A stretch of 64,000 nucleotides of DNA from assembly GCA_950097015.1 (NCBI GenBank), contig CATNEN010000037.1, forward strand, positions 682,001-746,000. Reading direction: 5' to 3'. The position numbers and the translations under genes are program-made. Of this stretch, positions 7,988-62,700 are shown piece after piece. The notes below the pieces were generated by a model. The model had not been told where the DNA came from and made no database searches. It saw only the letters and a list, made by a program, of their open reading frames with translations. The DNA comes from Macrostomum hystrix. Its lineage: Eukaryota > Animalia > Platyhelminthes. Within the stretch, counting starts at the first letter, position 1, and every line of letters begins with the position of its first letter.

Positions 7988-8645
7988 TCTACAGTTTGGT
8001 CTACAGTTAGGTCTACAGTTAGATCTACAGTTTGGTCTACAGTTTGGTCTACAGTTTGGTCTACAGTTAGGTCTACAGTTAGATCTACAGTTTGGTCTAC
8101 AGTTTGGTCTACACTTAGGTCTACAGTTAGATCTAAAGTTAAGTCTACAGTTAGGTCTAAAGTTAGGTCTACAGTTTGGTCTAAAGTTAGGTCTACAGTT
8201 AGGGCTACAGTTAGGTCTAGAGTTTGGTCTACAGTTTGGTCTACAGTTAGGTCTACAGTTAGATCTAAAGTTAAGTCTACAGTTAGGTCTAAAGTTAGGT
8301 CTACAGTTTGGTCTAAAGTTAGGTCTACAGTTTGGTCTACAGTTTGGTCTAAAGTTAGGTCTACAGTTTGGTCTACAGTTAGGGCTACAGTTAGGTCTAC
8401 AGTTTGGTCTAAAGTTAGGTCTACAGTTTGGTCTACAGTTAGGTCTACAGTTTGGTCTACAGTTAGGGCTACAGTTAGGTCTAGAGTTTGGTCTACAGTT
8501 TGGTCTACAGTTAGGTCTACAGTTCAGTGTACAGTTCAGTGTACAGTTAGGTCTACAGTTTGGTCTACAGTTTGATCTAAAGTTAGGTCTACAGTTTGGT
8601 CTAAAGTTAGGTCTACAGTTAGGGCTACAGTTAGGTCTACAGTCA
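7988..8645 (+). repeat. 12-bp minisatellite TCTACAGTT(A/T)GG x about 55
   Basis: Tandem copies, starting just after an AATAAA at about 7981. Confidence 0.95.
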
Positions 8646-9106
8646 TATTTACGGCTAGGGCTACAGGTAGGTCTACTTCATTCATAAGTCTTCCTCGCTA
8701 AAAAAATCCTTTAACCTAGTTTAGAAAGCATATTTTATACTTATCCTGTTACAATGAGAATGTGGGTTAGAATTGTAAAATCGAATAAGCTGGTGGTTTC
8801 CATCTAAAAATATGCGAATCATGGTTTTGTGCTACTATACTGTATTGACTTATGAGTTATTACCTGCAAAATATTACGAGTATATGCGCAAAATTATTTT
8901 GTATTATTACATAACTAACAAAACATACTAGCCTTATTCGATAATTTGTGACTATTCTAAGTTTTTTGCCTTTGCCCTCAATAAAACACTTCAGCCTACT
9001 TGCTAGGCCCATATGGGTGCAGAAAACACTGCGCCCGCATATTCACTTCTCATTATTGTGATTGCTTTCAGCTTTTCATTCGTTTATTTTACCCTTTTGT
9101 TTCTAG

Positions 9107-17900: not shown

Positions 17901-18168
17901 CTCCAGACACTTCAGTTCCACTCCAGACACTTCAGTTCCACTCAAGACACTCCAGTTCCACTCCAGACACTTCAGTTCCACTCCAGACACTTCAGTTCCA
18001 CTCAAGACACTTCAGTTCCACTCCAGACACTCCAGTTCCACTCCAGACACTTCAGTTCCACTCCAGACACTTCAGTTCCACTCCAGACACTTTAGTTCCA
18101 CTCAAGACACTCCAGTTCCACTCCAGACACTTCAGTTCCACTCCTGACCCTCTAGTTCCACTGCTGAC
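14935..18168 (+). repeat. 20-bp satellite AGTTCCACTCCAGACACTTC x about 160, with higher-order duplications
   Basis: Tandem periodicity; recurrent variant blocks at about 15800, 16420 and 16840. Confidence 0.98.
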
Positions 18169-22265: not shown

Positions 22266-23430
22266 GGTTAAGTTTTTTAACTGAATGTCAGCTTAATTTT
22301 AGGTAATTTGACTTACATTATTAACAAAAAACTAAACTTAGTTTAGCCTAAGAAACGGTGTGCTCAAACAATATTCCGATGCTATTAAAACAGGCAGGAT
22401 AATTTCATTTCCACATCAAAGGAGAGACCGCATAGTAGTTGGTTCTATTGTACGAGCAAAGAATTGACCCCGGAAAGAATAAATCACTGATCAATGTAGT
22501 CGGGTGCACCTTTTATTGGGTCCCAGCAATGCAATATACAATACTACTAGCAATATATAAACTAGAAAATACTTCACAAGCTGCAGCCAGAAAAGCCGGG
22601 AAGAAAATAGATTCCGGATCAAATAAAGTATGCTTTAATTTGGAATCAATTTGCAATGTAAAGTACATTCGAACGCCAATTTACATCTCCTATAGATCTA
22701 CAAGTAATACGTGCTCACAAGGCGGATCAAAGAGCGACGAGTCGTTTTCGTTTATAAACACTTCATCCCTATAGCCGATAGGGCTTTGGGGACCTAGGGT
22801 CAGCGCGCTCATTTTTTCATTTCCTCCATAGGGAATGGTTCTCATCATCTTTGGCTCGCTACCCGATTCCCTCTCCCCAAACACACACACTCACACAGCA
22901 GCAATGCCCTAGCTCCGTCTCCAATGCAATGTCTTGTGTGTCTCGTGGGCCGCTAGTGATAAACACTGAAGCCATCGGATGCAGGGCGGGGGTGGGCCTG
23001 CCGCTTGCCGTGTCGCATGCGACAAACTCATTTTCCCCTCGGATTCCGTTCTCTCCTCATCCTCGCCACTTCAGCCTTACGTATTCTGTCAGCGGCCTGC
23101 TAGTTTGGCCCACAGATGGGCGGGCGGGTTGGCTGGCTGATTTGCTGACTGGCCACGCTGCAATTGGAGAACTGCACGGAGACAGAGGCAGAGAAACTCA
23201 GCGGAGATGAGAGGGGACACAGAAGCGCACCCGGGGCCTCTCCCGGCTCTTTCTGGCCAAATCCCTGCGCATAGAAATAAAAGTTACAGAGCGGGCACAT
23301 AATCACCGAAGGTAATTATATATTCGCTTGTAGTTTTTGTCGAATCTTCATCCGCGCCATCCGTCAAAATAAACACTTTGAGTTCACCTGACGGTGTTTC
23401 AGCCCCAGAAACTGTAGATCAGTGAGCGTC

Positions 23431-25408
23431 ATGTCGGAAGACTGCGCAGTTGACGACGCCTACCCGATGCACTCGGAGGAGGCCTTCTACCGGGGCATCC
23501 AGTACGAGGCGCGCTACATCGGCAGCATGGACGTGGCCAGGCCGCAGAGTCGTGCTGAGATTGTAGCCGCAATGCGTCGAGTTCGCTTCGAGTTCAAAGC
23601 CAAGGCCGCCAAGAAGCGCAAGGTGGTCATCGCCATCTCGCTTGACGGCGTCAGCTTGATCTTCAAGCGACCGCCGAAGCCTTGGCACGAAGGCGTCGGT
23701 GGTGGCGGCGGCGCTGCTGGAGGCTGCGGCCAGCTGCTGATGCACCACCCCATCTACCGCATCTTCTACGTGTCGCACGACTCGCAGGACCTGAAGATAT
23801 TCAGCTACATCGCACGCGACAGCCACCGGAACGCGTTCAAATGCAACGTGTTCAAGGCCGCCAAGAAGGTGCAGGCTGTACGCATTGTGCGCACAATCGG
23901 CCAGGCCTTCGAGATATGCCACCAGCTGTCCATGGCGTCCAAGGAGCATCAGCAACAGCAGCAGCAACAGCAGCAGCTGAAGAAGCAGCAGCAGGCAGAG
24001 TCAGTGAAGTCGTCAGCCAAGTTGGAGACGCCGACGCCCCGAGAGCCTCAGCTGACCGAGTCGACGGTGTCCGTGGCCACCGAGACCTCGCCGAGCTGGG
24101 AGGAGCTGCAGCTGCTGATGCTGGCCGCCGCCGGCACTGACCCGGCAGGCAGCGACTCGAGCGAGGCCTGCGACTGCCAGACAATGCACTGGCGGCGCCA
24201 CAGCAGGCAGTTGATGCAGCAGAATCTTGAGCACCGGGCTCAGCAGACCCAGGCCGCTCTGGCCGAGGCGCAACTACTGCGCGATCAGCTGGCCGCGGAG
24301 TCCGCAGCCCGCACTGAGGCGCAGGCCAGGGCGCAGAGGCTGCTGGCGCAGAACCGCGACCTGCTGGATCACCTCAACCAGCTGGTGCATCGGACGCGAG
24401 CTTTGGAACTGCGATTGCATCATCAGCAGCAGCAGCAGCCAGCTGCGTTTAGGTCAGTCTTTGCTTAAACGGGATTTCCCAGTTTCTAAAAAATAATAAT
24501 TGCTGGGGCTGCAGGCAATGACATCAGTAGATCCGCAGCCAGCGAGATGGCAATCCTGAGCACACACGCACACAGATACCGTACGCAGGCACACACTCAC
24601 ACAGCGGGCTGCGCCTAACTTTCTCATCGTCAGGCAGTGTGCACTCTCACTGTGCCTTGGAGGTTGGCTCTCAAGGGCGTAAATTGCACGACAAGCCACC
24701 TAGCCTTCTCTCCGCGGCTGCGCCCCAAATTAATGGGGCAGCAGAGCATTCCGTGATTTTAAGAAGTGCAAAGCCGAGAAATGTCTCCCCCCCACATCCA
24801 TAAAAAGATAACGGTATAATTCGTCCCATTTGTATGGCTTCAATAAAGAGCTTACAGATTTCTTCTCATCATCCACCAGATGCTCAAGTAGTCAGTCATC
24901 CTATGCCACATTGCGAAGTGAATCTCAGCAGCAGCAACAGCAGCAGTCACTTCGCCAGCCAGCCACTCGAGCTAACAATGATTCCTTTGAAAACGACTAT
25001 AATGACGATGTGTCGCCGGACTCCGGGCACAAGGAGATGAGCTCCGACAGTTTGTCGCAGGCGTTGAGCCTCACGCTGGAGCCGACAGGAGCTGCGGCTC
25101 CACCGCCGCCACCACCGCAGATGCAGCAGAGACGCACTGTGCCGACGCCGGGCAGTCTAGACTGCAGGCCACACAGCTGGAAGCCGGCTGCTTCCGCCGC
25201 AGCTCCGGCCGACGCAGTCCAAGTCTCCTCGCTAATGGTCGCAGCGGCCACCAACGCTGCAGCGGCATTGTCAGGACCTGCAGTGACTTCTTGCTGGTCG
25301 GAGCGGTTCGATGCGGACGAGCCGTCGACTCTGCCGACCGCGGTGGCCGCCCACCTCAACCACTCTTTCGAGTGGAGCGGAGAAGCCGCAGGGGGACCGC
25401 GGAAATAA
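23431..25408 (+). CDS. NOS1AP: NOS1AP/CAPON (dyc-1-like) PTB-domain adaptor, about 516 aa; exons 23431-24452 and 24880-25408
   Basis: HSEEAFYRGIQYEARYIGSMDVARPQSRAEIVAAMRRVRFEFKAK, PIYRIFYVSHDSQDLKIFSYIARD, VRTIGQAFEICH and the coiled coil LLRDQLAAESAARTEAQAR..LLAQNRDLL match CAPON. The phase-2 intron AG|gtcagt...ccaccag|A is in frame. Confidence 0.93.
24491..24735 (-). mobile_element. SINE family A, 5'-truncated copy in the NOS1AP intron
   Basis: Reverse complement of the body of 6062-6424 (GAGAAAGT, TGCCTGCGTACGGTATCTGTGTGCGTGTGTGCTCAGGA, GCAATTATTATT tail). Confidence 0.88.
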
Positions 25409-25845: not shown

Positions 25846-26454
25846 TCACTCCTGGCGCAATCTTACTCTCGGCCCCACCTAACTCCGTCATGGTTCTCTG
25901 CACAGTCATACGAGAGTTATTTGTAACAAAGCCCTGCCATGTCCCAATCGTCTCTAAACCCTTGCACAACATCTTGCCACTGCTAAAATGAGATCCCTCT
26001 ATCGAACAAATTCTTACAATTAAGAAACGAATCCTTGTTTTTATCCTTGTTTTTTTGCCTATTAAAATGGGATTATGTTTTCTGTCTCATCCCAACTATC
26101 GGATTATTTTGCAATTTTGTCGCAGAAGCATTAATTTTTTATTTGCATTCATTTGCAATCGGTTCAGCAGCGAAGCTTTTGTTTATTTGCCTTGTTCAAT
26201 TACAAGCATAATTTTACTTTTAACTTGTCCAGCCTCTCCAGCTTCTATGCAACTGGTCGTCAATCGCGCCATACCTATTTATTGCATATTCTTACTACAC
26301 AGAAATACACTCTCTAACAATTTAACGAACAAGATTCGAACTACATAAAATGAAAAACATTAATAGAAACAAAGCTAGCTATTTCAAATCTCTAATCTGT
26401 GATTACGCTCGTAATCTAACTACTCCCAGCCAAATGTCACACATTGTTTTAAAT

Positions 26455-27155
26455 CACCCCGCCCCACCTCATTCCCTGCACCACCTCATTCCCTGCCCCA
26501 CCTCATTCCCTGCCCCACCTCATTCCCTGCCCCACCTCATTCCCTGCCCCACCTCATTCCCTGCCCCACCTCATTCCCTGCCCCACCTCATTCCATGCCC
26601 CACCTCATTCCCTGCCCCACGTCACTCCCTGCCCCACGTCACTCCCTGCCCCACCTCACTCCCTGACACACCTCATTCCCTGCCCCACGTCACTCCCTGA
26701 CACACCTCATTCCCTGCCCCACGTCACTCCCTGACACACCTCATTCCCTGCCCCACCTCACTCACTGACACACCTCATTCCCTGCTCCACGTCACTCACT
26801 GACACACCTCACCCCCTGCCCCACGTCACTCCCTGACACACCTCATTCCCTGCCCCACCTCACTCACTGACACACCTCATTCCCTGCCCCACCTCACTCC
26901 CTGAAACACCTCACTCCCTTCCCCACCTCACTCCCTGAAACACCTCACTCCCTGCCCCACCTCACTCCCTGACCCACCTCATTCCCTGACTTACGTCACT
27001 CCCTCCCCACCTCACTGCCTGCCCTTTCTCACTACCTGCCCCACCTAACTCCCCGACCCACCTCACTCCCTGCTCTGCATGACTTGCTGCCTCAACTCAT
27101 TCACTGCTCCACCTCACTCCTTACCCCACCTCACTCCCTGCTCAACCTCACTCCT
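26455..27155 (+). repeat. 17-bp minisatellite CCCTGCCCCACCTCATT/CACT, degenerating rightward
   Basis: Tandem copies sharing a core with the 25604 array. Confidence 0.93.
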
Positions 27156-27779
27156 TCTCGTACTTCTTTAATTTGTGGCGCTTGCATACGAAATACAGGA
27201 AATATACTAAAATTTACTCGGCCATACCATCAACTGCCTTCACCTGAACCCTTGAGCTCGCTCAATTAAGCTTCCTATAATTTTTTTCGTCTTGTCCTAC
27301 TCTCGCCTTGAAAGAGAAAGAAATTAAATTAGATTTCTCCCATTTTTAATGGGACCCGCCGCCTTGGGGGATAAAAAGGGGAGAAGAAGATTAAACGAGC
27401 GAAGCGGACTGAGAGAACGATTCAGCCGGCGATAACGAGCTGAAAATGAAGGCCTTCTCACTATTAGCAGACCTGCAGTCTTTCGCTGCATTTTTAAAGT
27501 CTCTGGGTCGACTCTACTCAGCCTGCCGGCCCAGTCAAAGCTGAGTAATGAAAAAAAGCGAAGCCTGCCTCACTAATGGGGTCGCGGACCGTCCTCGCAT
27601 CCTGCTCCACTGTGCTCACCTGAGCACCAATACTATTCCTAATTGACTTCGAGTAGACAAGCTTTGAAGAAGTCAAAGTAGTTCGGACGACACGCGAGGT
27701 GCTCTGTGCCGAACCCACTGCTCCGTGTTTGTCTACTCCCAGCATGCATCTCTTATTCGAACACTCTTACTCACCGTTC

Positions 27780-28125
27780 CTCTCATTTGTTCCCCTTAAC
27801 TCTGCTCCCCCTGCCACTGTTTTCTCCCCTACTGTTTTCTGTCCTCCTGTTCTCTTCTTCTCTTCTCCCCCTGTTCTCCTCTTCCCCTGTTCCCCTCTCC
27901 CCTGTTCCCATCTCCCCCTGTTTCACTCTTCCCCTGTTCCTCTCTCCCCTGTTCCCCTCTCACCTGTTCCCATCTCCCCCTGTTTCCCTCTTCCCCTGAT
28001 ACCCTCTCCCCTGTTCCCCTCTCCCCCCTGTTCCCCTCTCCCATGTTCCCCTCTCCCCCTGTTCCCCTCTCCCCTGTTCCCATCTCCCCCTGTTCCCCTC
28101 TCTCCCTGTCCCCTCTACAACTGTT
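27780..28125 (+). repeat. Polypyrimidine minisatellite (CCCCTGTTCCCCTCT-like)
   Basis: Low-complexity tandem. Confidence 0.9.
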
Positions 28126-35587: not shown

Positions 35588-38260
35588 CTAGAAGCCATCC
35601 AGGCTGATGCTAAATGTGTCCGACCAGCCCTCGATGAGGTCGCTCGCCCAAGCCAGCTCAGTCCACTCGCCGCCGCCATCGTCTTCGAAGCCAGCCGCGA
35701 AAATCCTGAGCCGCCGGCTCCAGACGATGGGCAGATTCAGCAGCTGGACTGGCCTCTGAAACTGCAGCCCCGGAGGTCCAACCAGCATCAGGGGCTGCAT
35801 CGGGGAGACTGCGAACTGCAAGTCGAACCCAGTCGCCGGTGAGGACGGCAGAGCCCCAGGCGGCAATTCGAGCACTGCTCCTGTCTCCGGGCAGATCAGC
35901 CGGCCGCCCGCTGCGCTGAAATGGCCTCGAACACTCTGAGCGCACAACTGGCGAAGCGCGTCCGGCGACAGCTCGTCCGCGTCCTCGTAGCCGTTTTTGT
36001 CGTTGCTGAACTTCTCTGCTGGGCTAAGTGGCTCAGCAACAGTGCATAGGCGCAGCCGCGCCTCGGCCTCCTCTTTGAAGTGGGCGGGCGGCAGGTCCAG
36101 GCCGGCACTCGGGAACAGCTGCATTAGGCCTTCTCGGTGTGAAGGTGGAAAACTTTTGCAGTGTGCCGCAGTCTACTATTAGTAGCAAAATGGAGCAATG
36201 GCAAAGATAGATCAAAGCAGTGCCAAATTCGCATTCCCAGTCTAAAAATCCACAACTCACCCAGCTCCATCGCCCGATGCTCATCCCCATTGCCCTTGAG
36301 GCAGCCGTCGGCATCATCCATCGTCGGCGCCACTGGCAGCCAGACAGGCTCCTGACGACATCGCTTCACTGCGGCGATGACACCCGCAAGCAGCCTGGCG
36401 GCGTCAACTTGAGGCTGACGTCGCCGGCCTCCGAGTGATACAACGGCGTTCAGGCGTCCCAGCTGGCGCAATTCACGCCAGCGCTTCTTGCCTGCGCTGA
36501 CGTAGATGACAATTGGCGTGCGAGCCATCGGATTCGCTTCGGCCGTTGCGACAGCTTCAGCCTGCGAGATCAGGTAAAACTCGGCACCAGGCAGCACCGA
36601 TCGAGCCTGCAGGCCGGGCTGAACTAGCGGTGCCAGCGGGCCTAGCAGCAGCATGGGCGACGGGCTGGAATCTGCTCGACCGAGCGCTACGCGGATGTAA
36701 GCTGGAGGTTGACGGCCCGTAAGCATCGCCAGCTGGTCGGCGCGGGCTGCGCTGGGAACAAGGCCGTGCTCCGGAGGCGCCAGCGGCGCCACAGCAGGAT
36801 GAAGCCGCGTAGCCTGCCAGGCGCCCAGTCGTCCGTCAGCCAGAGTGTCGTCGATGCGCAGTATGTCACCGGCGCGAACTTCCAGACCGTCGCATGTCTG
36901 CGGCAGGTCGAATCTAACGCACACGTGAAATAAATCGCCAGGAATCTCACCGGAGATCAGTCGAGAGAAGCCGACGGGGTCTGCGGTCACCGTTGCCTGG
37001 ACGGCAGATCCACCGGACATCAGTGCTAGCAGGGCGGCCTCCTTCGTGCCCGATGGTCCATCCAGCCGGACTCCACCAGCCGACAATAATCGGTCGCCGC
37101 CTCGAATCCCGGCATTGTAGCCCGGACGTCCTGGCACGGCGTCATCCACGAATACGCCCGAGGCGTTGCCACCGACAAGCCGCAGACCGAGGCCGCCATC
37201 AGGCCCTGGCCGTATGAGAACCGTCCGAGCTGCTGGTGTAGATTGCGAGCGTGCAAGGTCGAGCCGCAGCTCACGCGCCGACCCGAGGTGGCGAATGAGC
37301 CGCTCCGGTGTGGCCGCCGACGCCGAGACGCCGTCGATGCTTTTAACGGTCACTGGCGGAAGCGTTATCGAAGCGGAGCCGAAGGATTTCGTTCGTCGAC
37401 GTTGTTGCTGGACGACGGTGAAGGTCGCCTCTGCAGTGGCCAGCGTCCTCGTTGATATCGTCGCAGATCGCCGGCGTCGCTCAATTGTCAGCCTCGCAGT
37501 CGGTGGCGAGCGTAACAATTCACGAATCAGCATCTCGTCTGGTCGCCGATGTCCAATGATCATTGGAATGTCAAAGCCGTTGCAGGCGATGATGCGGTCC
37601 AGTGTTTGAAGGCGACCTTCTGCAGGACCGCCTTCAAGCACGTGGCTCACTACGACTACTCTGCAACCTTCGGCTGTCTCGTGCGGAAGTGCGACAACCT
37701 CGAAGCCGTATCCGAAGCCTGGCTGGCGCGTGACGCTTACTTCGGACTGGCACTATGCGTATGAGGGAAATGTTTTGCTTTAAAAATCATCATTCGGGTA
37801 CTTAGCCCTGGCAACTATAAATTACTAAATGTGGCCTCTCTGCGGAGAACAACAAAAGGTATCTCATACATGTACCCATTAAGAGTGACCTCTGATGATT
37901 CGGCCAAAAAAGAGTATAATAATCATTTCTCACCGAATCCATTTGAGCTGGTTGTATCCACGACTTTTAGCGGCCTGTTTAAAAAAATTGACAAGAAACT
38001 ATCTATTAACTCTTGAATAGTCTTAAATTGTTTAGCTCGGCAACAGGGAGTCGATAAGAAAAGTTGCACGGACGTAAAACCGCTGAAGAATGGGTCCGCT
38101 TCTCCGTCTGTCTCTCGTGCTATCGATTTTTAACTCACAATGGGTGAATTTCGTGGACCACAAGCTATTGGTAGACTGAATGCTTGGCATAAGGCACACT
38201 TACAATAAGTTCTGGGTGGCTATTGCAGGTGGCCATATCTTCTGCTCCGAAATCTGCCAT
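35588..38260 (-). CDS. Divergent compact ZO-1/Polychaetoid-like MAGUK (PDZ1, degenerate PDZ2, PDZ3, SH3, reduced GK, ZU5), about 696 aa; exons 38260-38204, 37752-36261, 36129(or 36132)-35588
   Basis: PDZ1: VSVTRQPGFGYGF..VSHVLEGGPAEGRLQTLDRI. PDZ3: GGLGLRLVGGNASGVFV..GIRGGDRLL. SH3: GDLFHVCVRFD..GDILRIDDTLADGRLGAW..GLVPSAARADQLA. GK start: PAYIRVAL..LLGPLA. ZU5: RGHFSAAGGRL..TGAVLELPPGAL..VGPPGLQFQRPVQL, ending SISLDGF (ZO-1 ends SVLIDHF). Exon 1 MADFGAEDMATCNSHPELI|gtaagt joins exon 2 in phase 0. Confidence 0.85.
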
Positions 38261-44685: not shown

Positions 44686-45258
44686 CTACGCAACCGTAGG
44701 GCCATCATCAAAGACACTGGCGCCACACTCGCCACCGCATCCGCCTCTACCGCTGACCCCACGCGACGCAGGCGTCTGTCCTCGGCACCTTTGGCAACAG
44801 TTGCAGCAGCACCGGTTACAGCACCGGTTGCAGCACCGGGCGAGCAGAGCAAACTGGGCGCGCCGTCTGGCTAGCGCGCAGAAAATAGCGCCAATCAATA
44901 GCAGCGCGCTGCTGCCAATGAAGCTGACCACGCCGCCAGCCATGAGACCTCGCGCCGCACGTCCATTCGGCCCCTGACCAGTGCGAATCGACAGCAGCAG
45001 CGATGCCAGAATGAAGACCAGCAGGCCGAGGACGAACAGCATCACGGAGCCCAGCTGCCATACCCGTTGCTGACAGGGCACGCTGATGTAGTGCCGATGC
45101 ACATGCTGCTGCTGCAGCTGCTGTTGCTGAAGTCGTTGCGTCAAGCTTTGTTCTAGATCTTGCTGCGGCTGCTGTTGCTGCTGTTGCTGTCTCTGATGAC
45201 ACGGGTCTTCGTCGACTGTCAGGCCGTCATTTTCAGAAATGGAACATTTGCTATTCAT
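44686..45258 (-). CDS. Hypothetical intronless 190-aa two-TM protein with polyQ N-terminus and Cys cluster
   Basis: GC-rich coding-like ORF from ATG 45258. Two hydrophobic helices (LGSVMLFVLGLLVFILASLLLSI; LMAGGVVSFIGSSALLLIGAIFCALA) are followed by RCCNRCCNRCCCNCC. Confidence 0.7.
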   Translation of the reverse strand: MNSKCSISENDGLTVDEDPCHQRQQQQQQQPQQDLEQSLTQRLQQQQLQQQHVHRHYISVPCQQRVWQLGSVMLFVLGLLVFILASLLLSIRTGQGPNGRAARGLMAGGVVSFIGSSALLLIGAIFCALARRRAQFALLARCCNRCCNRCCCNCCQRCRGQTPASRGVSGRGGCGGECGASVFDDGPTVA

Positions 45259-45800
45259 TTTCTGACCTAGTCGAGTCGCAATCTTCAATGAAATTTTTTG
45301 CAGCCCGTGTGGATCAGTTTTTTCTTGTTCTCAACGGGTTTTTAACTGAAAATTCTCAATAGCGCCATCCGCTCGGTGGCTCTAGCTGTGGAATCCGGCA
45401 AAGTCCCTTCCTTTGCTTTGCCTCGCTGGCTTTTTCCATGCCGATTAGAATCTTCTCGGGCCTTCCTCTTCCCCCAAACCCTCTCTCTCTCGCTCTCAAC
45501 CGACTGTCCGACTAATCCGATTGGTCCGGTATCATTCGCGTATCGCTTGCTGGATCAGTTTACACTCCCAATTTGGTAGATAGCAGCCAGTTCAGCGAAC
45601 GAGTGGAGATAGAAATTAGCCTGAGCAGCTGGCTGGACTTTTTAAACAAAGATCTTATAGCATCTCTCTTGTTAGAGGTCATGCGCACAAGTTACTGACT
45701 CCGAGTACGAAGCCATGATACACGTAACTATGAGACCAAAAGCACGAGTTTGCCAATGATTGGAAGCTTGTTAATTTTTATGAAGAGGCCAGACTGAACG

Positions 45801-46125
45801 TCTGATTAACCACCTGACAGAGAAGACTGTCAGGTCTGATTAACCACCTGACAGAGAAGACTGTCAGGTCTGATTAACCACCTGACAGAGAAGACTGTCG
45901 GGTCTGATTAACCACCTGACAGAGAAGACTGTCAGGTCTGATTAAACACCTGACAGAGAAGACTGTCAGGGCTGATTAACCACCTGACAGAGGATACTGA
46001 AGGTCTGATTAACCACCTGACAGAGAAGACTGTCGGGTCTGATTAACCACCTGACAGAGAAGACTGTCAGGTGTGATTAACCACCTGACAGAGGATACTG
46101 AAGGTTTGATTAACCACTTGACTGA
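45801..46125 (+). repeat. 34-bp hairpin-containing tandem repeat GATTAACCACCTGACAGAGAAGACTGTCAGGTCT x about 9.5
   Basis: Periodicity of 34; internal 9-bp inverted repeat ACCTGACAG/CTGTCAGGT around a 6-nt loop. Confidence 0.95.
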
Positions 46126-47173
46126 GGAGTCTGAAGGTGTATCAATCTCCTGCTTGATTGACTATCTAAATGACACACTAAAGGTTTGATAGCCATCTCA
46201 TAGATGAAGCTGAATGATTCCATTTTTACGCGAAACATGGCCTGAAGGATAACAAAAGTATGAACATACTTTCCTGAAAATGTAAACAACGGATGTTTTA
46301 TGCCTTTTATGCCAAATTTTACCACCCAGATCTTGGACAGGAACTTTCTGGCTGCTTCTGTGAATAAACTATGTGTTTTCGTTTTTAGTGTTTGGGTGGC
46401 ATAGAGATGATACCAACGGAAAACACCACATGGACTACTCGTATTCCATTGAAATTTAAAAACGCTCGAAGGGCAAGCATTCACTCCCAAACGATCTGAG
46501 CTGTACATTTAACCTAATCTCAATCTTAACTTAATCGTATTGAAGATCACTTCAGAATTTAAACAATATTTGTATAGAATGTTTACATTGTTAGTTTGAA
46601 TAATCAGAACATGAAAATATCTGGACTGCCGTTTAAACAGTCGAGTCAAGATATTATTTCTAAGAAACTTTGAACATTTGTTTGGATTACTTTCACGAAG
46701 ACCTTGTTAGATTTTTGTGCAAATTTTACCGTGTAATTAGCTTAAAGCAAAAGTCACGTGACATTTTCCCACCTGCTTGTTTATTGACATGACTCCGTAC
46801 ATTGTAGTAGGAATGAACTAATATTTTTTTATTTATACATTTTAATGTTACATTTTCGTTCAAATAAACTTGCATACTGCTCCCGTTGCCAGTTTGATTG
46901 TCCAATTCTCATTTCGATCGTCAAAAAAGTCTGTGGCCTAAGCCGCAGCTGCTGCGAAGCTGAGCTGAGCTGCTGCATGCAGATCTATGGCTGTCTTCAT
47001 TTTGATTGTCCATCTTCTCATATTGATTGTCAAAACCAATATTTATTTAGCATCGCTGCTATTCGATAGCTCACTTCACTTATCAAATACCAGGCAACTT
47101 TGCCATCACAGTTCTGAATTGACACTTTGATTTAACCTTTTCGTTCTGCCCTCAGCCTTACCTGTGATTCCCC

Positions 47174-48016
47174 ATGGCAAACTTCAAGCGGTCAGGGTTT
47201 CAGCTTCCTCTGCTAGCGCTGATTGCTTTTGCTGCTTTCTCCGCCGGCGCCGCCTCCGACAATGGTAGGAAAATATCCTGGCGCAAGTCCAGAGATCAGG
47301 TCAACTGTACTACCGATCGTAAGTTCGGCGAGCTGCGTATTTCTAATCAGTTGTATTCGCAATGTGACCACATGTCACTAAGACGCGAAATATTCTAAGC
47401 ATGATAATTTACTGTATTGATCAGAATGGCTAAATCGTTCATGTACGAGCTATACGTGGATCGAAACCAGATCTGGCTCATGATTAACATTTATCCGATT
47501 AAAATTACGTGCAATACTTTCTTAAAACACTTCCATTTTGCAGCTAAGTACCTGTGCGGTACGGTTAAATCGGTACACGACGGCGATTCGCTCCGCATCA
47601 GGCCGGATTCTAAGAATGCGCGCTCCGCTTCCGTTCGCGTCCGCCTCCTGCAGATAGACGCCCCGGAGCTGTGCCAAGCCTATGGACCACAGGCGCGCAA
47701 GTCTCTGGCAGACTACCTGCCGCGGGGCAGTCGCGTCTGCATTGTCTCGCCCGGCCAAGATCACTACCGCCGACTACTGGGATTCGTCTGCCCAATGGAC
47801 GGCTCGACCATCGACATCGGGCACCGCATGCTAGCCCACGGCCACGCCTGGTGCTACCGCGGCACCTGCAGCCGGGCCAACGCGGCTGCCTCAGACGCCG
47901 CTCGGCTGGCCGGACTCGGCCTGTGGAAGCCTGGCCAGACGCCGATTGCTCCGTGGGTTTATCGTCGATTTAAGCGACGTCGTTCGACGAAGCGCGGCAG
48001 CCATGATTGCGCTTAA
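47174..48016 (+). CDS. Secreted single-domain staphylococcal nuclease/thermonuclease homolog, 187 aa; exons 47174-47264 and 47544-48016
   Basis: Exon 1 is signal-peptide-like (MANFKRSGFQLPLLALIAFAAFSAGAASDN). A phase-1 intron G|gtagga...ttttgcag|CT joins it in frame. Exon 2 carries VHDGDSL, RVRLLQIDAPE, QAYGPQA, DHYRRLLG, MLAHGHAWCY, ARLAGLGLW and PWVYR, the SNase-family motifs. Confidence 0.9.
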
Positions 48017-48499
48017 CGAGAACGCCGTACGACACTATAACGTGATTTAGGGAATCAAGAAGCCTTGATTCTAAATTTCTAACGATTAACAACCTATAGA
48101 CTAAAGCAATATCCTAGCCTGTAATATTTATACCTTAACAACTATCTTTACGCTTTTCAATCATTACAGTCAAACCAAAATGAATAATGACTGAACACAA
48201 CTACTTAAACATTAAAAGACAGTAGTATGCCAAGAAAATAGCCCTTTTAGTTGGCAGTAGCGTGTCATCAACAATGATCGGCAGTTTTTTTGCTTCAGAA
48301 AACAACTGCCTTTAAGGCAAAATTTTCGTTAAAGCATTGCTCCGTCCATTTGCTGTCTTCTTGCTACGAAAATGGATAGACTTCGCAAATTTCTGAATTA
48401 TAAGTTAATGATAGCTAACAACACAACATACTCTCGTGCTTTTAGATCATAAAATCCTTCTTTATTTCTTGCGTTGGTTACACATTTCACATTCCAAAA

Positions 48500-49455
48500 A
48501 CTGATGAACCCCGAATATAATACATCCTACAAACTTCATGAACCCAAAATTATACATTTCCTAACACCACAAATTTCCCAACCCCTCAACTTCATGAACC
48601 CAAAATAGCGCACATCCCACAAACTTCATGAACCCCAAATATCCCATATCCCCCAAACTTCATGAACCCCAAACATCACATATCCCACAAACTTCATGAA
48701 CCCCAAATATCACACATCCCACAAACTTCATGAACCCCAAATATCACACTTCCAACAAACTTCATGAACCCCAAATATCACACATCCAACAAGCTTCATG
48801 AACCCCAAATATCACGCATCCCACAAACTTCATGAACCCCAAATATCACACTTGCAACAAACTTCTTGAACCCCAAATATCACACATCCCACAAACTTCA
48901 TGAACCCCAAATATCACACTTGCAACAAACTTCATGAACCCCAAATATCACACTTCCAACAAACTTCTTGAACCCCAAATATCACACTTCCAACAAACTT
49001 CATGAACCCCAAATATCACACTTCCAACAAACTTCATGAACCCCAAATATCACACATCCCACAAACTTCATGAACCCCAAATATCACACTTCCAACAAAC
49101 TTCTTGAACCCCAAATATCACACTTCCAACAAACTTCTTGAACCCCAAATATCACACATCCCACAAACTTCATGAACCCCAAATATCACACTTCCAACAA
49201 ACTTCATGAACCCCAAATATCACACTTCCAACAAACTTCTTGAACCCCAAATATCACACTTCCAACAAACTTCATGAACCCCAAATATCACACTTCCAAC
49301 AAACTTCATGAACCCCAAATATCACACATCCCACAAACTTCATGAACCCCAAATATCACACTTCCAACAAACTTCTTGAACCCCAAATATCACACTTCCA
49401 ACAAACTTCATGAACCCCAAATATCACATATCCCACAAACTTCATGAACCCCAAT
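48500..49455 (+). repeat. 34-bp minisatellite AACTTCATGAACCCCAAATATCACACATCCCACA x about 28
   Basis: Periodicity of 34. Confidence 0.95.
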
Positions 49456-51777: not shown

Positions 51778-54323
51778 GGGACTACGACATTTGACTGCTG
51801 CAATTTGACTTCCACCATTTGACTGCGGAGCATTTGACTGCGGAGCATTTGACTGCGGAGCATTTGACTGCGGACAATTTGACTGCCAGCCATTTGACTG
51901 CGGACAATTTGACTGCGGAGCATTTGACTGCGGGCAATTTGACTGCGGAGCATTTGACTGCGGGCAATTTGACTGCAGAGCATTTGACTGCGGACAATTT
52001 GACTGCGGAGCATTTGACTGCGGAGCATTTGACTGCGGAGCATTTGACTGCGGGCAATTTGACTGCGGAGCATTTGACTGCGGACAATTTGACTGCGGAG
52101 CATTTGACTGCGGACAATTTGACTGCGGAGCATTTGACTGCGGACAATTTGACTGCGGAGCATTTGACTGCGGGCAATTTGACTGCCGAGCATTTGACTG
52201 CGGACAATTTGACTGCCAGCCATTTGACTGCGGACCATTTGACTGCCAGCCATTTGACTGCCAGCCATTTGACTGCGGACCATTTGACTGCCAGCCATTT
52301 GACTGCCACAATTTGACTGCGGACCATTTGACTGCCACAATCTAATTCCCCAGTTCCAGAACCAGAATAAATGGTAAATTCGTTCATTATAACATTCTAT
52401 CTCCACGACCAGAAAGCTTCGCAATAGGTATATAATTATATTTCCGGATAAATAAGTATAAATTTGTCAGTGAAAAATTGTGCCTCAGCAACCAATTATG
52501 AGTATTTTACGGTTGCTCTCACACTTTGTTATAGTCATTTTTATCTAGGAAATTTCGAGCTCTGAGAGAAGGAAAATCCTCTGTTGACAATTGTTTGCAA
52601 TTGAAATTATCCTCACGGAGCCATGGGAATTTGCAATGGGTTTAAAGTGACCCTCGTTTCAACCGCTCTGCGACTAATTATAAACATCTAAACGAAATTA
52701 GCTTTTTATTGTGTTCAACATGTGCGCCTTTAGCAAGACATGTACCTGCAGATTAGCCAGTAGCCTTACTTTTTAGGGAGTGCGCTAAGAGCAAGAGGAC
52801 TAAAATTAAGTATGTATTGTAAGTAAGTATTGTATACATTTTTGCAATGATATATACAAATTTGCTTTATATTTGCAAATAAATAAATAACGCCCATCAG
52901 GAAAAATTTGCAATTGAATTTATCATATCTGCAACTGAGTTCGGCAACCCGTAGCTTTGAGTAACTGATCGGCTCTTATTGGCGGGGGTCTTACGGACAG
53001 GTGCAGGATACTGTCCTGGTTTCGGTAAGGGCTGGGTGAGAGCGTAGCAGCACAGTGACTGCCATGCCGATTAGAGTGTACACTCAAACCGATTGAGGCA
53101 AATGCGCTGGCTTGTAAGCCTGCTCCACTGAGCTGTCGGCTCTATGGCAGAATGGGGCACTGCTGTTTACACGCGAAGAGAACTTTTAAAAGCCATTAAA
53201 GCGATTTTTCTGCAATATTTTCTTTTTTTCTGAAGAAAAAAAATCTAAAAACTGCTGACATACACCAACCTTCAGTCAGTTTTTGCCAAATATCTCAATG
53301 GCCGAAGGGGCTGGAGACTTGGTCAAGAAAAATTGATCGGGATCATGCATGAGTGACGCTGAAATTATATAGATTCGTTGATATTCAGGGCGGCTAGTAT
53401 ACACTATACACAAATGTGCGAGCGTACAAGCAAAATCTATAAATCTATACATGTACTTGTCCGCATTCGAATGCAATTTTTCCACTATCAATTGAAGTGG
53501 CAGTCAATAAATGTGCAGCCAAAAGTGCGGAATTGTCCGCAGTCAAATGGCTGGCAGTCAAATGGCTGGCAGTCAAATTGTCCGCAGTCAAATGCTCCGC
53601 AGTCAAATTGTCCGCAGTCAAATTGTGGCAGTCAAATGGCTGGCAGTCAAATGGTCCGCAGTCAAATGGCTGGCAGTCAAATGGCTGGCAGTCAAATTGT
53701 CCGCAGTCAAATGCTCCGCAGCCAAATTGTCCGCAGTCAAATTGTGGCAGTCAAATGGCTGGCAGTCAAATGGTCCGCAGTCAAATGGCTGGCAGTCAAA
53801 TGGCTGGCAGTCAAATTGTCCGCAGTCAAATGCTCGGCAGTCAAATTGCCCGCAGTCAAATTGTGGCAGTCAAATGGCTGGCAGTCAAATGGTCCGCAGT
53901 CAAATGGCTGGCAGTCAAATGGCTGGCAGTCAAATTGTCCGCAGTCAAATGCTCGGCAGTCAAATTGCCCGCAGTCAAATTGTGGCAGTCAAATGGCTGG
54001 CAGTCAAATGGTCCGCAGTCAAATGGCTGGCAGTCAAATGGCTGGCAGTCAAATTGTCCGCAGTCAAATGCTCGGCAGTCAAATTGCCCGCAGTCAAATG
54101 CTCCGCAGTCAAATTGTCCGCAGTCAAATGCTCCGCAGTCAAATGGTGGAAGTCAAATGGCAGCAGTCAAATGGTGGAAGTCAAATGGCAGCAGTCAAAT
54201 GGTGGAAGTCAAATGGCAGCAGTCAAATGGTGGAAGTCAAATGGCAGCAGTCAAATGGTGGAAGTCAAATGGCAGCAGTCAAATGGTGGAAGTCAAATGG
54301 CAGCAGTCAAATGTCGGGCTCCC
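51778..54323. mobile_element. Foldback-like structure: inverted arms (51778-52341, 53531-54323) of 15-bp subrepeats ATTTGACTGCGGAGC around a 1.2-kb spacer
   Basis: Left end GGGACTACGACATTTGACTGCTGCAATTTGACTTCCACCATTTGACTGC matches the reverse complement of the right end GGGAGCCCGACATTTGACTGCTGCCATTTGACTTCCACCATTTGACTGC. No TSD or transposase was found. Confidence 0.65.
52925..53142 (-). mobile_element. Possible third tRNA-derived SINE inside the foldback spacer
   Basis: Minus strand begins GAGCCGACAGCTCAGTGG (A-box-like) and has GGTTTGAGT (B-box-like); only one copy is present in the window. Confidence 0.3.
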
Positions 54324-56284: not shown

Positions 56285-57800
56285 GACACATCAATTAAAC
56301 ACACAGAACCAAGTTATATATATTTTTAAGAAATGAAAACTGTACAATACAAAGTGCGTATCGATTTCGGTCCAGTCCGGTTAACAAGAGAAAAAACAAA
56401 AACCAAATAAAGTTCAAAGACGCTTCTAACATAGCTAAAACACATTGAGTTGGCGGCTTGCACCCCCCATGGCCATGGCTAACTGACTGTTCAAATATGG
56501 TTTCTGAGCCTTAATGTACATAGCCTCGAGAATGTTCAATTTGTTTTCTTGGCTACAGGAATCAATCACATATCACAGCAGATCTTATTGCAACAGGAGT
56601 TACACGAGAGAATGTGCTCATTGATGGCAGAATTTCTAATCCAATGCTCCTTAACCCTTGTGTACAAGTGTCGCTTAGTTTTACCGATGTAGGAGATGTT
56701 CTGATCCACAGAACAATGAAATTTATACACGACACCTGCAACAAGTGGTCTAGGAACATAGGACTTCAACCTGCAGACAAACTGAGCAATCTTTTCCGTG
56801 CGGAACAAAACCCGGAGCTGGGAATCAATGTGACTTCTAAACAATTTTCCCACTTTCTTCCCAAACTCCATGGAGCAGAGGCCCAAAAAAGGAACCACAA
56901 TTACGGGACTACGATCATTATTGAGATTGAGATTATTGAGATTTTGACCAGAGAACTTCTTGCAGAGAAACCTATTAATGATGTTGGAAATATGGCCACG
57001 AGGGTATCCATTCATCATGAACAACCGAGTAAGCTGCTCCAGCTCATCATGAAAAAGCTTCCAGGAACTGCAAATCAGAAAAGCTCTTTTGAGAAAGCAC
57101 TGCACCAAACCGTCTTTCCATTGCCTAGGACAGAGGGCATCAAACCTTAGCATGAGACCAGTGAAGCTAGCTTTTCTAAACACGCTAGTTTGAATCAAGC
57201 CTTTGCTCACATCAACGTCAATGTCCAGAAAGGGAAGTCTTTTTTCTCCACCCTCAGAAGTAAACTTGATGTTCTTATGGGTAGCATTGAAAGTATTGAA
57301 GAACTCTTCCTTTTTGGCCTCATTGTCGAAAATGGCAAAAGTATCATCTACATAACGTTTGTAAAAATGTGGAGCACACGGGAGGGCCATCCACTCTTTT
57401 TCCCAGTAAGCCATGCAGAGATTGGCAAGAGTAGGAGCCAGAGGACTGCCCATAGCGCATCCATCAATCTGCCTGTAGTATTTGTCCCGGAACAGGAAAA
57501 TACCAGAGGTGGCGAACCCAAGCATCTTCTTGAAAGTGGTTTTAGGAAAGGATGGGTGATTAGAGCTTTTATAGACAAGGTCAGTAGCAAGGTCAATGAC
57601 AAACTGCATTGTTAGCCATGGGGTGCAAGCCGCGAACTCAATGTGTTTTAGCTATGTTAGAAGCGTCTTTGAACTTTATTTGGTTTTTGTTTTTCTCTTG
57701 TTAACCGGACTGGACCGAAATCGATTCGCACTTTGCAATGTACAGTTTTCATTTCTTAAAAATATATATAACTTGGTTCTGTGTGTTAAATTGATGTGTC

Positions 57801-59718: not shown

Positions 59719-62700
59719 ATGGCGCAGGCTATACCAATAAAATTCCAGGAGCATTTTCAGGTAAGGATGTTGTAAAAGCTTTAAAATGTTTAAAACCAAG
59801 TTTCAAAATGTTCTTTTATTACTACCTTGATATTAATTTTCGAATATATAATAATTCAAAGTAAAAAGTAATTGATTGCTCGCATAAAGACTATATTTAG
59901 TTATACAGCTCTAGTCTTGGTTTTGTTGTTAATAACAATTTATTTGTTGTAAAGCATCATCAACTTATTTCTTAACAGAACATTAATTACAGTAGTCAGC
60001 AAAGTAAGCAGAGTTGCCTCCCTTGCTGGCTGCGGGTCTAGTGTCACCAAATGATCTGCCATTTCCCGCAGCACTCCTGCAATTATTATTATTATTATTT
60101 CAAAATTAATAAAAAAATTGCTCCTTAAATCCAGAAAGGTGTGGACCTTATGACTAATATAGGATATAGCGACCATTATTTGGAGTTATATTTGTGTATT
60201 GTATTTGTAGCTAAAGATGTGGCTAGCTACAGTAAGTTATTACGATTATAGATATAAGGCTTTAAAAAAATATTTATATATTATTTTTTTGTAAAAATAT
60301 TTAATTTGTTGTATGATTTTGTATATATATATATAGATATAGTTATATGAACTTTTTCCCTTTATCTACTTCACATTTTTTGTTTTCCCAACTTGAATCA
60401 TAAATGGGGCCAAAAGTAAAAGCATTTAGAAATTTTAATGCCTTTAGCATTTGGGAGCCTATTAGGAGTTAGAGGTAAATTGTAAAGTTAGGCAAAAGGT
60501 TTGGGGGGAATTGTAAACAAATGATATTAAATACATAAATATCTAGGTAGTTATTAGTCCTATTTGTAAATATATGACATATAAAAGTTATAGTTAAAAA
60601 TGTCACTTTATAAATTTATTTAGACTGTCTATATTGGAAACTCAGTTCCCTGGTGTGGTATTAGAGACTTAGGCTCTAGAAAGAGAGAGCTCTAGAGAAG
60701 CTCTAAAGATTTCAATGAAACCTGTGTTGTTAGGGTAATTTGGATGTTATCATGAGTCCCAAATTATCATGGTATAGTTCTATTAGTTACATAGGCCTAT
60801 ATCTCTGTGATTAAATAATAGGCCTATGATTTAAAAGATTGTATACATGATCCTACCTACAGTGGGTTACAGAAGTTATTGGCATTTAATTTTACTGATA
60901 AAAGCATGAATATGTTTCAAGAAAATTTAAGAAATTCATTAATAAGCATATAAACAATTTTAGCCAATTTTATTTTAACTAACACAAAGAAGACCCTAAT
61001 ATTGGATTTTTATATTTATGTGCATTTTAGGAATTATCATCATGACAAATGTAGGAATTATTAAACCTTCTTTATTGCTATTGCTAATGTCTATAAATAT
61101 TGCCTCTTTTAGTGCCTATTATCAAATTGATTGTTGCACCATACATGCTACACAATTTGTACAGAATTTTTATTAACCCATTCACTGCCTCCAACCCATC
61201 AGCTGCAAAACATTGGCATCAACAATGCCAGCATTGGATTCTCCACCCTCACCATGGAGTCGGACCGGTTCATCTGTGTCCGCGAGAAGGTCGGCGAAAC
61301 TGCCCAGGTAGTGATTGTGGACATGAACGATCACAATAACCCAACTAGGCGGCCCATCTCAGCTGACAGCGCCATTATGAACCCAGTTAGCAAGGTGATT
61401 GCGCTTAAAGCTGGCAAGAGTCTGCAAATCTTCAACATCGAATTGAAATCGAAGATTAAATCACACGCCCTTACCGAAGATGTCACATTTTGGCGTTGGA
61501 TCTCGGTTAATACCATCGCCATGGTAACGGACTCTGCCGCTTATCATTGGAGTCTGGAAGGCGACTCAACCCCGGTGAAGATGTTTGATAGGCACGCCTC
61601 TCTGGCCAACTGTCAGATCATTAACTATCGTTGCGACAATAGCCAGAAGTGGCTGCTAATTATTGGCATCTCTGCCCAGCAGAATCGGGTAGCCGGCGCT
61701 ATGCAGCTCTATAGCGTCGAGCGTAGAGTCTCCCAGCCAATCGAAGGCCACGCCGGTGTATTTGTCGAATTCCGCGTCGAAGCCAACGCTCAGCCTTCTA
61801 ATCTGTTCTGCTTCGCCAATCGGGGCCTGCAGGGCGCCAAGCTGCACGTGATTGAAGTCGGCCAGCCGACAGCCGGCAATCAGCCCTATCCTAAGAAACA
61901 AGTGGACCTGTTCTTTCCGCCTGAGGCCACTGCAGACTTTCCTGTTGCTATGCAGGCTTCTGCTAAGCACGGCGTCATCTACATGGTAACTAAATACGGA
62001 TACATTCATCTGTACGACCTGGACACGGCCACCTGCTTGTACATGAACCGCATTAGTAGCGAGACAATCTTTGTCACTGTGCCGCACGAGGCTAGCGGCG
62101 GCATTATGGGCGTCAATAGAAAGGGCCAAGTGCTCAGTGTCAGCATGGACGAGGATAACGTTATAGGTAAGTTGCTTCAGTTTGTTATTTTGATTTCTAG
62201 CTAGCTGAAAAAAATGTGTGCCATGAATCAGTAGTTGGATTGTCATAACATCAAATTAACATGCATTGTAAAGCTGTGACCTAGTTATGTGCAAACGGAA
62301 GTCTATTGGAAAAATTCATATGGCCATTTTTTAACTTGCAAAAATTAGCCTGAATTATGGTCCTTGATTGAGATAAAATTTGCAATATCTCCACAGAGGC
62401 TTTCAACTTCTGCTTCGTAAGGCAATGCAGTACCAAATTAATAATTGTGACCTCAACTTCTATTCGGACTGTGACTCAATTGTACACTAGATTATGCTGC
62501 ATTTAACAGCTGTGTGAACTAAGGCAATGCAGAGTTAAGTGTCTTGCTGACTTGCTAGAAGGACACAAGTTGTTTTAGTGTAGTCAGGAAACGAACACCC
62601 GATCTTGTGTGGTCGGTGGCAGAGCGGTTAACGCGTTTGCTTCGAATTTCCTGAACTCGATTCCGCGGCGAGGCCACATTTATTTGGGGCGCAGCCGTGC

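Follow-up and report, generated by a model that had tools for sequence, protein, structure and literature searches.

The genome of the flatworm Macrostomum hystrix codes for a single-domain staphylococcal-type nuclease (SNase), the gene of which is almost certainly an expressed, conserved flatworm gene with a trans-spliced leader at the head of its mRNA. Transfer from a bacterium or from a bacterial mobile element, before the compared Macrostomum species diverged, is the best explanation of its presence, and a probable one: transfer is strongly favoured, short of proven. The gene lies within a stretch of 64,000 nucleotides (the window, the positions of which are used throughout). A preliminary description, made from the letters of the window, had proposed a domesticated bacterial-type SNase with intact catalytic residues in an animal genome, and this proposal is borne out by the host genes around it, a spliced mRNA with its leader, an orthologue in a second species and bacterial kin.

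Expression is documented by cDNA from two runs, X4 and X5, aligned to window positions 46200-48500. Four public runs, all from one study, contain 66-71% of the words sampled from 47100-48100, about the share expected for an mRNA that lacks the intron and the upstream flank. A single contig per run (1059 and 1088 nt, with at most one differing letter) covers 47155-47318 and then 47544-48438 or 47544-48444. The joint, reported as skipping 225 nt between GT and AG, is supported by a depth of 58-62, and depth falls to 0 both in the intron and in 46508-46815 (X4 and X5). Both contigs start with 23 letters that are absent from the window before 47155, TGCGAAGACTCAATTTATTGCAT; once the G at 47155 is added, they equal the last 24 nt of the 35-nt spliced leader of M. 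lignano, CGGTCTCTTACTGCGAAGACTCAATTTATTGCATG, as printed in PMC8629364. Strong conservation of this leader in M. cliftonense and in M. hystrix is reported (PMC10468722). In the cDNA contigs of the two runs, a GT-AG intron has thus been removed and a Macrostomum leader added: the mRNA is both trans-spliced and cis-spliced by the machinery of the worm. The public record does not list X4 and X5 as RNA; we infer that they are RNA from the coverage pattern, the absence of the intron and the presence of the leader. Other cDNA contigs touch 46824-47043, with loose ends that match nothing in the window. They probably come from a dispersed repeat transcribed elsewhere, rather than from an exon further upstream or from the partner gene of an operon.

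The coding sequence, read on the plus strand, extends from the ATG at 47174 to the stop codon at 48014-48016 (Table 1). Ahead of it, the terminal ATG of the spliced leader opens, with the 5' UTR, an upstream reading frame of four codons that ends with the TGA at 47165-47167. The preliminary description had placed the splice donor at GTAGG 47265, ending the first exon at 47264 and leaving an intron of 279 nt. This site exists in the sequence and is in frame, but it is not used: the cDNA and the M. lignano homologue both point to GTAAGT at 47319. The GT-AG intron itself and its acceptor end at 47543 are as described, but its length is 225 nt, and a spliced transcript, anticipated across 47264/47544, does exist, with 47318/47544 as the only junction seen in X4 and X5. 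No contig uses the donor at 47265. That model would drop the last 54 nt of exon 1 (47265-47318), and with them 18 residues (GRKISWR...NCTTD) that are conserved in the M. lignano protein P0002, where the intron interrupts the same codon in the same phase. Joining 47318 to 47544 restores a proline codon (C/CT), giving NCTTD-P-KYLCG, identical to M. lignano, and the linker GRKISWRKSRDQVNCTTD is homologous to GRKISWRQAKGRVNCTTD of P0002, located there directly before KYLCG. The product therefore has 205 residues after correction of the donor, and not the 187 previously proposed. A start within an unspliced intron (ORF 47417-48016, with TTG or an internal ATG) is ruled out by the zero cDNA depth of the intron.

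Table 1. Features of the M. hystrix window, with the parts of the SNase gene and its surroundings in order of position
Feature	Position	Strand	Basis
PTB/PID domain	23422-24468		Pfam
PDZ and ZU5 domains	35588-37650	-	Pfam
Upstream neighbour gene, conserved exon (microsynteny anchor)	44839-45087	-	tblastx to M. lignano
Tandem array, upstream flank of the SNase gene	45793-46133		
Polypyrimidine tract and AG (47154-47155), acceptor for spliced-leader trans-splicing	47140-47155	+	Fit of the X4 and X5 cDNA contigs begins at 47155
5' UTR, 18 nt	47156-47173	+	Sequence and spliced-leader junction
Exon 1, coding part	47174-47318	+	cDNA contigs
Signal-peptide-like leader, residues 1-26	47174-47251	+	Kyte-Doolittle heuristic; similar leaders in M. 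lignano paralogues
Linker, some 22 residues long and containing GRKISWRKSRDQVNCTTD, an NCT sequon and a conserved cysteine, C45; end of exon 1	47252-47318	+	cDNA cover to 47318; homology to P0002
Spliceosomal intron, 225 nt, GTAAGT...TTTTGCAG, phase 1, GC 0.37	47319-47543	+	Joint 47318 to 47544 in X4 and X5
Exon 2, coding part: one complete SNase domain, basic C-terminal helix, stop codon	47544-48016	+	Pfam match 47636-47929
3' UTR as far as contigs reach	48017-48444	+	Contig ends 48438 (X4) and 48444 (X5), just before the 34-bp satellite
34-bp satellite tandem array, downstream flank	48588-49454		
Penelope-like RT/GIY-YIG fragment	56566-57609	-	Pfam
Clathrin heavy-chain propeller repeats	61131-62204		Pfam

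A bacterial-type gene in an animal assembly immediately raises the question of contamination, and here composition might seem to favour it, as exon 2 has a GC content of 64%, as against 37% for the intron and the flanks. However, host genes of the window have exons just as rich in GC. The coding sequence of the SNase (GC 0.62, GC3 0.68) falls within the range of these exons (GC 0.50-0.64, GC3 0.62-0.81; for PID, PDZ, ZU5 and the neighbour exon, GC 0.62-0.64 and GC3 0.62-0.81), so that its composition is that of host coding sequence, as had been noticed in advance. The gene is also embedded among host genes, with PID, PDZ and ZU5, and clathrin propeller domains and a Penelope-like element in the same 64 kb, and it is flanked on both sides by the tandem satellites previously reported. 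The presence of a spliced leader and the removal of an intron in the mRNA exclude a bacterial contaminant. An independent assembly, that of M. lignano, has the same gene, with the same intron and the same neighbour. All in all, a bacterial gene mis-joined to worm DNA in a contaminated or chimeric assembly is extremely improbable, and the opinion that contamination is not involved stands, with animal genes in the window, intron and leader processed in the mRNA, and a positional orthologue in M. lignano.

This orthologue belongs to a family. In M. lignano, three paralogue groups are found: Mlig022653g4 with Mlig022653g1, Mlig008456g1, and Mlig018861g1 with Mlig002410g1 and Mlig002410g2. Identity to the window protein is 65% for BOX15_Mlig022653g4 and 48% for Mlig008456g1 as well as for Mlig018861g1 and Mlig002410g1-2, and the database protein closest to the window product is P0002 of M. 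lignano (65% identity). Fits of protein to locus give each M. lignano group a single phase-1 GT-AG intron, four residues past the linker cysteine, at NCTTD/P, DCATA/E and NCDNI/R, with lengths of 734, 3319 and 3536 nt. Since its position and phase are common to the three groups, the intron predates the duplications. The gene upstream of the SNase gene (44686-45288, minus strand) has no Pfam match and weak leads only in the ESM atlas, while tblastx matches its conserved exon to M. lignano L001 8373-8621 with 67% amino acid identity over 83 residues. This exon lies 2.1 kb upstream of the window gene, on the opposite strand, and its M. lignano counterpart is likewise upstream of Mlig022653g4, at about 1.4 kb, which makes Mlig022653g4 the orthologue of the window gene by position. 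Comparison of the two coding sequences yields dN of 0.26-0.28 and dS of 1.0-1.2, hence dN/dS of about 0.25, a rough value because dS is near saturation, but one that indicates constraint under purifying selection. The M. lignano copies are already present in databases as hypothetical proteins, with the UniProt name 'TNase-like domain-containing protein'. Our literature search on Macrostomum thermonuclease or SNase, and on four M. lignano locus tags, returned nothing relevant in the library covered, and among the papers listed there for horizontal gene transfer in flatworms none deals with a flatworm nuclease.

Judging from its residues and its modelled fold, the product is likely to be a thermonuclease of the secretory pathway, very probably active. 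Exon 2 holds one match to Pfam PF00565 (40.1 bits, the curated cut-off being 21; E = 5.6e-10; cover of positions 1-106 in a profile of 107), which confirms the single SNase domain assigned at the outset. Alignment to the nuclease of Staphylococcus aureus pairs D61 and D63 with D19 and D21, R82 with R35, D87 with D40, E90 with E43, and Y123 and R125 with Y85 and R87 (205-residue numbering), so that the motifs DGD, RVRLLQIDAPE and DHYRR are intact, as had been recognized; A88 occupies the place of T41, a backbone ligand in S. aureus. Across an alignment of 14 sequences, from Macrostomum and bacterial relatives, the columns of the seven paired residues are invariant, D63, D87, E90, R82 and R125 among them. 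The AlphaFold2 model computed from this same alignment has a pLDDT of 92.7 and a pTM of 0.87. Foldseek matches S. aureus nuclease with a probability of 1.00 (TM 0.80, about 20% identity), and bacterial thermonuclease clusters of the ESM atlas match with TM 0.87 and an rmsd of 1.3 A over 143 residues. By the model and these matches, the protein has the architecture of the family, an OB-fold barrel with three helices.

The leader resembles those of exported proteins: K5 and R6 precede a hydrophobic core at residues 11-22, where the best 12-residue Kyte-Doolittle mean is found (2.57), followed by a small-residue site of AGA/A type, with heuristic -3/-1 sites at 23-27. By the same heuristic, hydrophobic leaders are present in every Macrostomum copy. 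The corrected product has eight cysteines, all past the leader (45, 53, 92, 114, 131, 152, 157 and 204), in place of the seven counted earlier in the mature part. Six of the eight (45, 53, 114, 131, 152 and 157) recur in every paralogue group of Macrostomum, a pattern that would fit an extracellular, disulfide-bonded protein. A basic tail is present as noticed previously; it is not a eukaryotic addition, however, but aligns with the PWxWRRxxR C-terminal helix of bacterial relatives and is, by this alignment, a trait of the family.

Where are such relatives found? A profile made from the three closest Macrostomum sequences was run exhaustively against 1.84 billion representative proteins. It retrieved 24,904 relatives, ten of which have E <= 1e-30. 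Half of these ten are M. lignano entries; the other five are proteins with multiple SNase domains, the full-length scores of which sum the contributions of several domains. Three of the five top matches from outside Macrostomum (P0010, P0011 and P0015) sit on densely packed contigs of bacterial type: P0011 has DHFR, ThyA, L19 and others as neighbours, P0015 is located between MatE and H+-PPase genes, and P0010 is on a tightly packed contig of 1.5 kb. P0013 is a JGI metagenome protein named endonuclease YncB, and P0014 an ENA metagenome protein. The best single-domain matches, at 41-46% identity, form a subfamily the named members of which are 'thermonuclease family proteins' of Alcaligenaceae and Burkholderiales (Pusillimonas, Yanghanlia, Pollutimonas, Castellaniella and others). 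The narrower alignment used for a contig search was biased towards the Alcaligenaceae-type motifs it came from; a single-protein scan of genome contigs gave 98 pattern matches and no relative. The family is very common on conjugative plasmids, with at least 5000 matching PLSDB records, the best at 37-40% identity. Wherever a relative from outside Macrostomum has a name or an established location, it proves to be bacterial, phage-like or carried on a plasmid, the near relatives being mostly metagenome proteins, with gene context read for a handful.

The route of the gene into the worm may have been a detour, through another eukaryote (a prey alga, a fungus or a protist) or a virus that had itself gained a bacterial thermonuclease. 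What could be said for it is that P0098, a near neighbour in a quick tree, comes from a contig that looks like phage and carries DNA polymerase A and AAA genes, and that many top matches are on short contigs. A second near neighbour in that tree, however, is on a bacterial contig; every inspected contig is densely packed with bacterial or phage genes, the ESM atlas clusters that were matched are 87-100% Bacteria, and Macrostomum is the sole eukaryotic name among the 120 matches listed. The phage collection gave two matches only (34-38% identity over 62-63% of the query), too weak and partial to support a known phage donor. We deem such an indirect transfer quite improbable, next to direct acquisition from a bacterium or its mobile element.

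Trees agree on a single origin in the worm lineage. The quick tree, of 181 domains, makes Macrostomum one group (SH-aLRT 91), with P0041, P0098 and P0128 as neighbours (SH-aLRT 87). In a careful tree, of 81 rows including 25 named bacterial species and 143 columns, the four sequences from Macrostomum form a monophyletic group (UFBoot 100, SH-aLRT 96), so that one origin in this lineage is well supported. The stem of the group is 0.27 long, compared with 0.22-0.38 for stems of bacterial subclades. The group is part of a polytomy, with clades of Alcaligenaceae, of methylotrophs and Pseudomonadales, and of Actinomycetota and Gemmatimonadota, and with the trio P0041, P0098 and P0128. The kinship suggested by the preliminary description is upheld in that the nearest kin are bacterial and Macrostomum is monophyletic, but the branching among bacterial clades is a polytomy, in trees from which LCL3, CAN1/2 and the repeats of SND1 were left out.

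This composition of the trees, both of them free of eukaryotic reference SNases, matters for one further account, namely that an ancient eukaryotic single-domain lineage, akin to LCL3 or CAN, was inherited vertically and survived in Macrostomum while being lost or unsampled in most animals; the tree alone does not exclude an old eukaryotic lineage of this kind. Single-domain SNases do occur in plants (PMC3505149) and in fungi, and the family is old in Macrostomum, where paralogues are only 47-48% identical. Against vertical descent, the best matches from outside Macrostomum belong to one particular bacterial subfamily (41-46% identity, with a TM of 0.87 to bacterial clusters), whereas S. aureus nuclease is only about 20% identical, which places the worm proteins inside bacterial diversity and not outside it. 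No other animal protein is among the top matches of the exhaustive search, in the databases that it covered, and the architecture differs from that of CAN, with its N-myristoyl anchor and split SNase domain (PMC3505149). Vertical inheritance is thus unlikely, and distinctly so.

Acquisition from bacteria, in contrast with these accounts, can be laid out as a sequence of steps. A gene of the thermonuclease family would have been captured from a bacterium or its mobile element before the compared Macrostomum species split. Its leader region, either exchanged or reshaped, would then have become a signal peptide of eukaryotic type on an exon of its own, and the boundary of leader and nuclease domain would have come to carry the single intron seen today. 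Duplication after capture would have produced at least three paralogue groups, and the gene would since have been kept at a syntenic locus under purifying selection. At present, exon 1 would supply an ER signal peptide and a short cysteine-containing linker, and exon 2 a complete thermonuclease domain, with all predicted Ca2+-binding and catalytic residues intact. The protein would enter the secretory pathway, be stabilized by disulfides, and act as an extracellular, Ca2+-dependent endo- and exonuclease on both DNA and RNA, indifferent to the sugar, most probably in the gut lumen or in surface secretions of a worm that eats microbes and diatoms. Taken in full, as an expressed two-exon gene, captured from bacteria and coding for a secreted Ca2+-dependent nuclease, this remains a likely account and the best explanation that we have.

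As for the role of the enzyme, digestion of nucleic acids of prey or microbes in the gut seems in our judgement most likely, followed by defence at the surface or in mucus, and then by a function in the ejaculate. Digestion in Macrostomum is partly intracellular. This, along with a predicted mature part that is very basic (pI about 10.2), lends something to the idea that a protein of bacterial origin has ceased to be a free extracellular nuclease, working in the lysosome or phagosome of gut cells or simply binding nucleic acids. Against it, all catalytic residues and Ca2+ ligands are kept in three paralogue groups under purifying selection, and it is in proteins exported from the cytosol that one typically sees conserved cysteine pairs and a signal peptide, so that we consider it unlikely; in both its forms, lysosomal or phagosomal and nucleic-acid-binding, the protein would still be a nuclease of the secretory pathway. 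The most specific version of the extracellular account, an old bacterium-to-flatworm transfer that gave rise to a Macrostomum family of secreted, disulfide-rich thermonucleases, in at least three groups with a shared intron, for digestion of prey or biofilm or for surface defence, has in our view somewhat better than an even chance of being correct.

To our knowledge, few bacterial genes have so far been well validated as functional in animals, and our search of the literature found none reported for Macrostomum, a model for regeneration and reproduction. The present case is unusually clean: the gene is linked to host genes, has an intron, receives a spliced leader, has its orthologue in another species and is under purifying selection. 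It further allows one to locate the eukaryotic parts of the gene, the only intron being at the boundary between signal-peptide-like leader and nuclease domain, in all paralogues alike. Because the protein is small and easily expressed, and because RNAi and transgenesis are available in M. lignano, whether it serves digestion, defence of the surface or reproduction is directly testable. To be sure, the enzyme class is a classical one and the M. lignano copies were already deposited: the gene adds a sound example and does not amount to a new kind of system.

The worm protein can be compared with several known systems. SND1 (Tudor-SN) shares the SNase fold (Foldseek match 4qmg, 19-20% identity), but it is a cytosolic and nuclear protein of about 900 residues, made of tandem SNase-like repeats and a Tudor domain, without signal peptide, while the worm protein has 205 residues, a single SNase match, which corresponds to one domain with its full catalytic set, and a predicted secretion leader; the Tudor-SN architecture is absent. 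Fungal LCL3 is also a single-domain SNase, with an N-terminal membrane anchor, a mitochondrial location and a place in a fungal clade. In plants, CAN1 and CAN2 are Ca2+-dependent SNase-type nucleases that act on the cell surface or beyond it; N-myristoylation and palmitoylation provide their anchor, an anticodon-binding-like insert interrupts their SNase domain, and they have an ABC-transporter-like region (PMC3505149). By contrast, the worm protein has alanine at position 2, a hydrophobic leader of cleavable type and an uninterrupted domain, that is, neither the Gly2 myristoylation and palmitoyl-cysteine motif nor the split domain of the CANs. Nuclease A (Nuc) of S. aureus has the same fold, Ca2+ ligands and catalytic residues (D21, D40, E43, R35 and R87) and is secreted, as the worm protein is predicted to be; with no cysteine, it differs from the worm protein, which has eight and also has, at its C-terminus, the extra basic helix found in the proteobacterial subfamily. 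Outside Macrostomum, it is with the thermonucleases or YncB-type endonucleases of Burkholderiales and their plasmid-borne relatives that the likeness is closest, a single SNase domain of about 140 residues behind a leader, which in the worm protein is predicted to direct secretion. The Burkholderiales proteins and the worm protein share HDGDS, R-x-R-L-x-Q-IDAPE-L-x-Q-AYG, D-x-Y-x-R, GLW and the basic C-terminal PW-x-(W/Y)-RR helix. The worm gene alone has a separate exon for a predicted signal peptide of eukaryotic type, a phase-1 spliceosomal intron and spliced-leader trans-splicing, and its cysteine pattern (C45, C53, C114, C131, C152 and C157) contrasts with the four-cysteine pattern of the Alcaligenaceae proteins. 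The TNase-like proteins of M. lignano, finally, belong to the same family and have the same two-exon structure and the same intron position, and Mlig022653g4 shares even the upstream neighbour.

The 3' end of the Macrostomum spliced leader (SL) is itself an ATG, which, once the leader has been trans-spliced, starts an upstream open reading frame in the SNase mRNA. This short frame is the same as that of the main coding sequence, and its stop codon lies 6 nt ahead of the main ATG at 47174. Among the database entries for the M. lignano counterparts, P0009 (Mlig022653g1) tracks P0002, the closest protein, until AGLG, beyond which its residues look like a translation of that DNA in another frame; judged from this reading, it would be a copy carrying a frameshift or else an error of the assembly. 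A further entry, P0001, has an N-terminus resembling intron read-through where the signal-peptide exon belongs.

Two adjoining genes of a bacterial Logan contig (L004) code for a 559-aa protein that has four SNase domains in tandem and a 309-aa protein that has two; both rank among the best-scoring relatives. Secreted tandem-SNase proteins seem common among the top matches.

Features of the window and of the bacterial contig
Feature	Coordinates	Strand	Basis
Unannotated neighbour gene, conserved exon	44686-45288 (core 44839-45087)	-	Protein likeness to M. lignano L001
Upstream ORF, 4 codons (ATG CCT TAC CTG TGA)	47153-47167, with SL	+	SL-junction reading
15-bp-unit array, 35 copies	51816-52335		
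15-bp-unit array, 53 copies	53539-54313		
ORF with weak reverse-transcriptase and GIY-YIG matches	56566-57609	-	
Two adjoining bacterial genes, tandem SNase domains	L004 10001-12606		

Upstream of the SNase gene, the core of the neighbour exon shares 67% protein identity with positions 8373-8621 of L001, the M. lignano locus carrying the SNase orthologue. The exon matched no Pfam family, and an atlas search returned weak leads only, to PIRT/TMEM100-like small membrane proteins of eukaryotes (score 0.8). Between this exon and the SNase gene, several cDNA contigs, as long as 1747 nt, from the public runs X4 and X5 align to region 46824-47043 over 30-220 nt only, then run on into sequence absent from the window; the region is probably a piece of a dispersed, transcribed repeat.

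The units of the two 15-bp arrays are mutually reverse complementary (CATTTGACTGC and GCAGTCAAATG), and the arrays form a large inverted satellite pair with about 1.2 kb between them. GC skew is extreme at 8001-14000 (+0.45 to +0.77), 16001-18000 (-0.59) and 26001-28000 (-0.50), stretches that presumably consist of strand-biased simple repeats or satellites. As for the ORF beyond the arrays, the pairing of a reverse transcriptase with a GIY-YIG domain is typical of Penelope-like retroelements.
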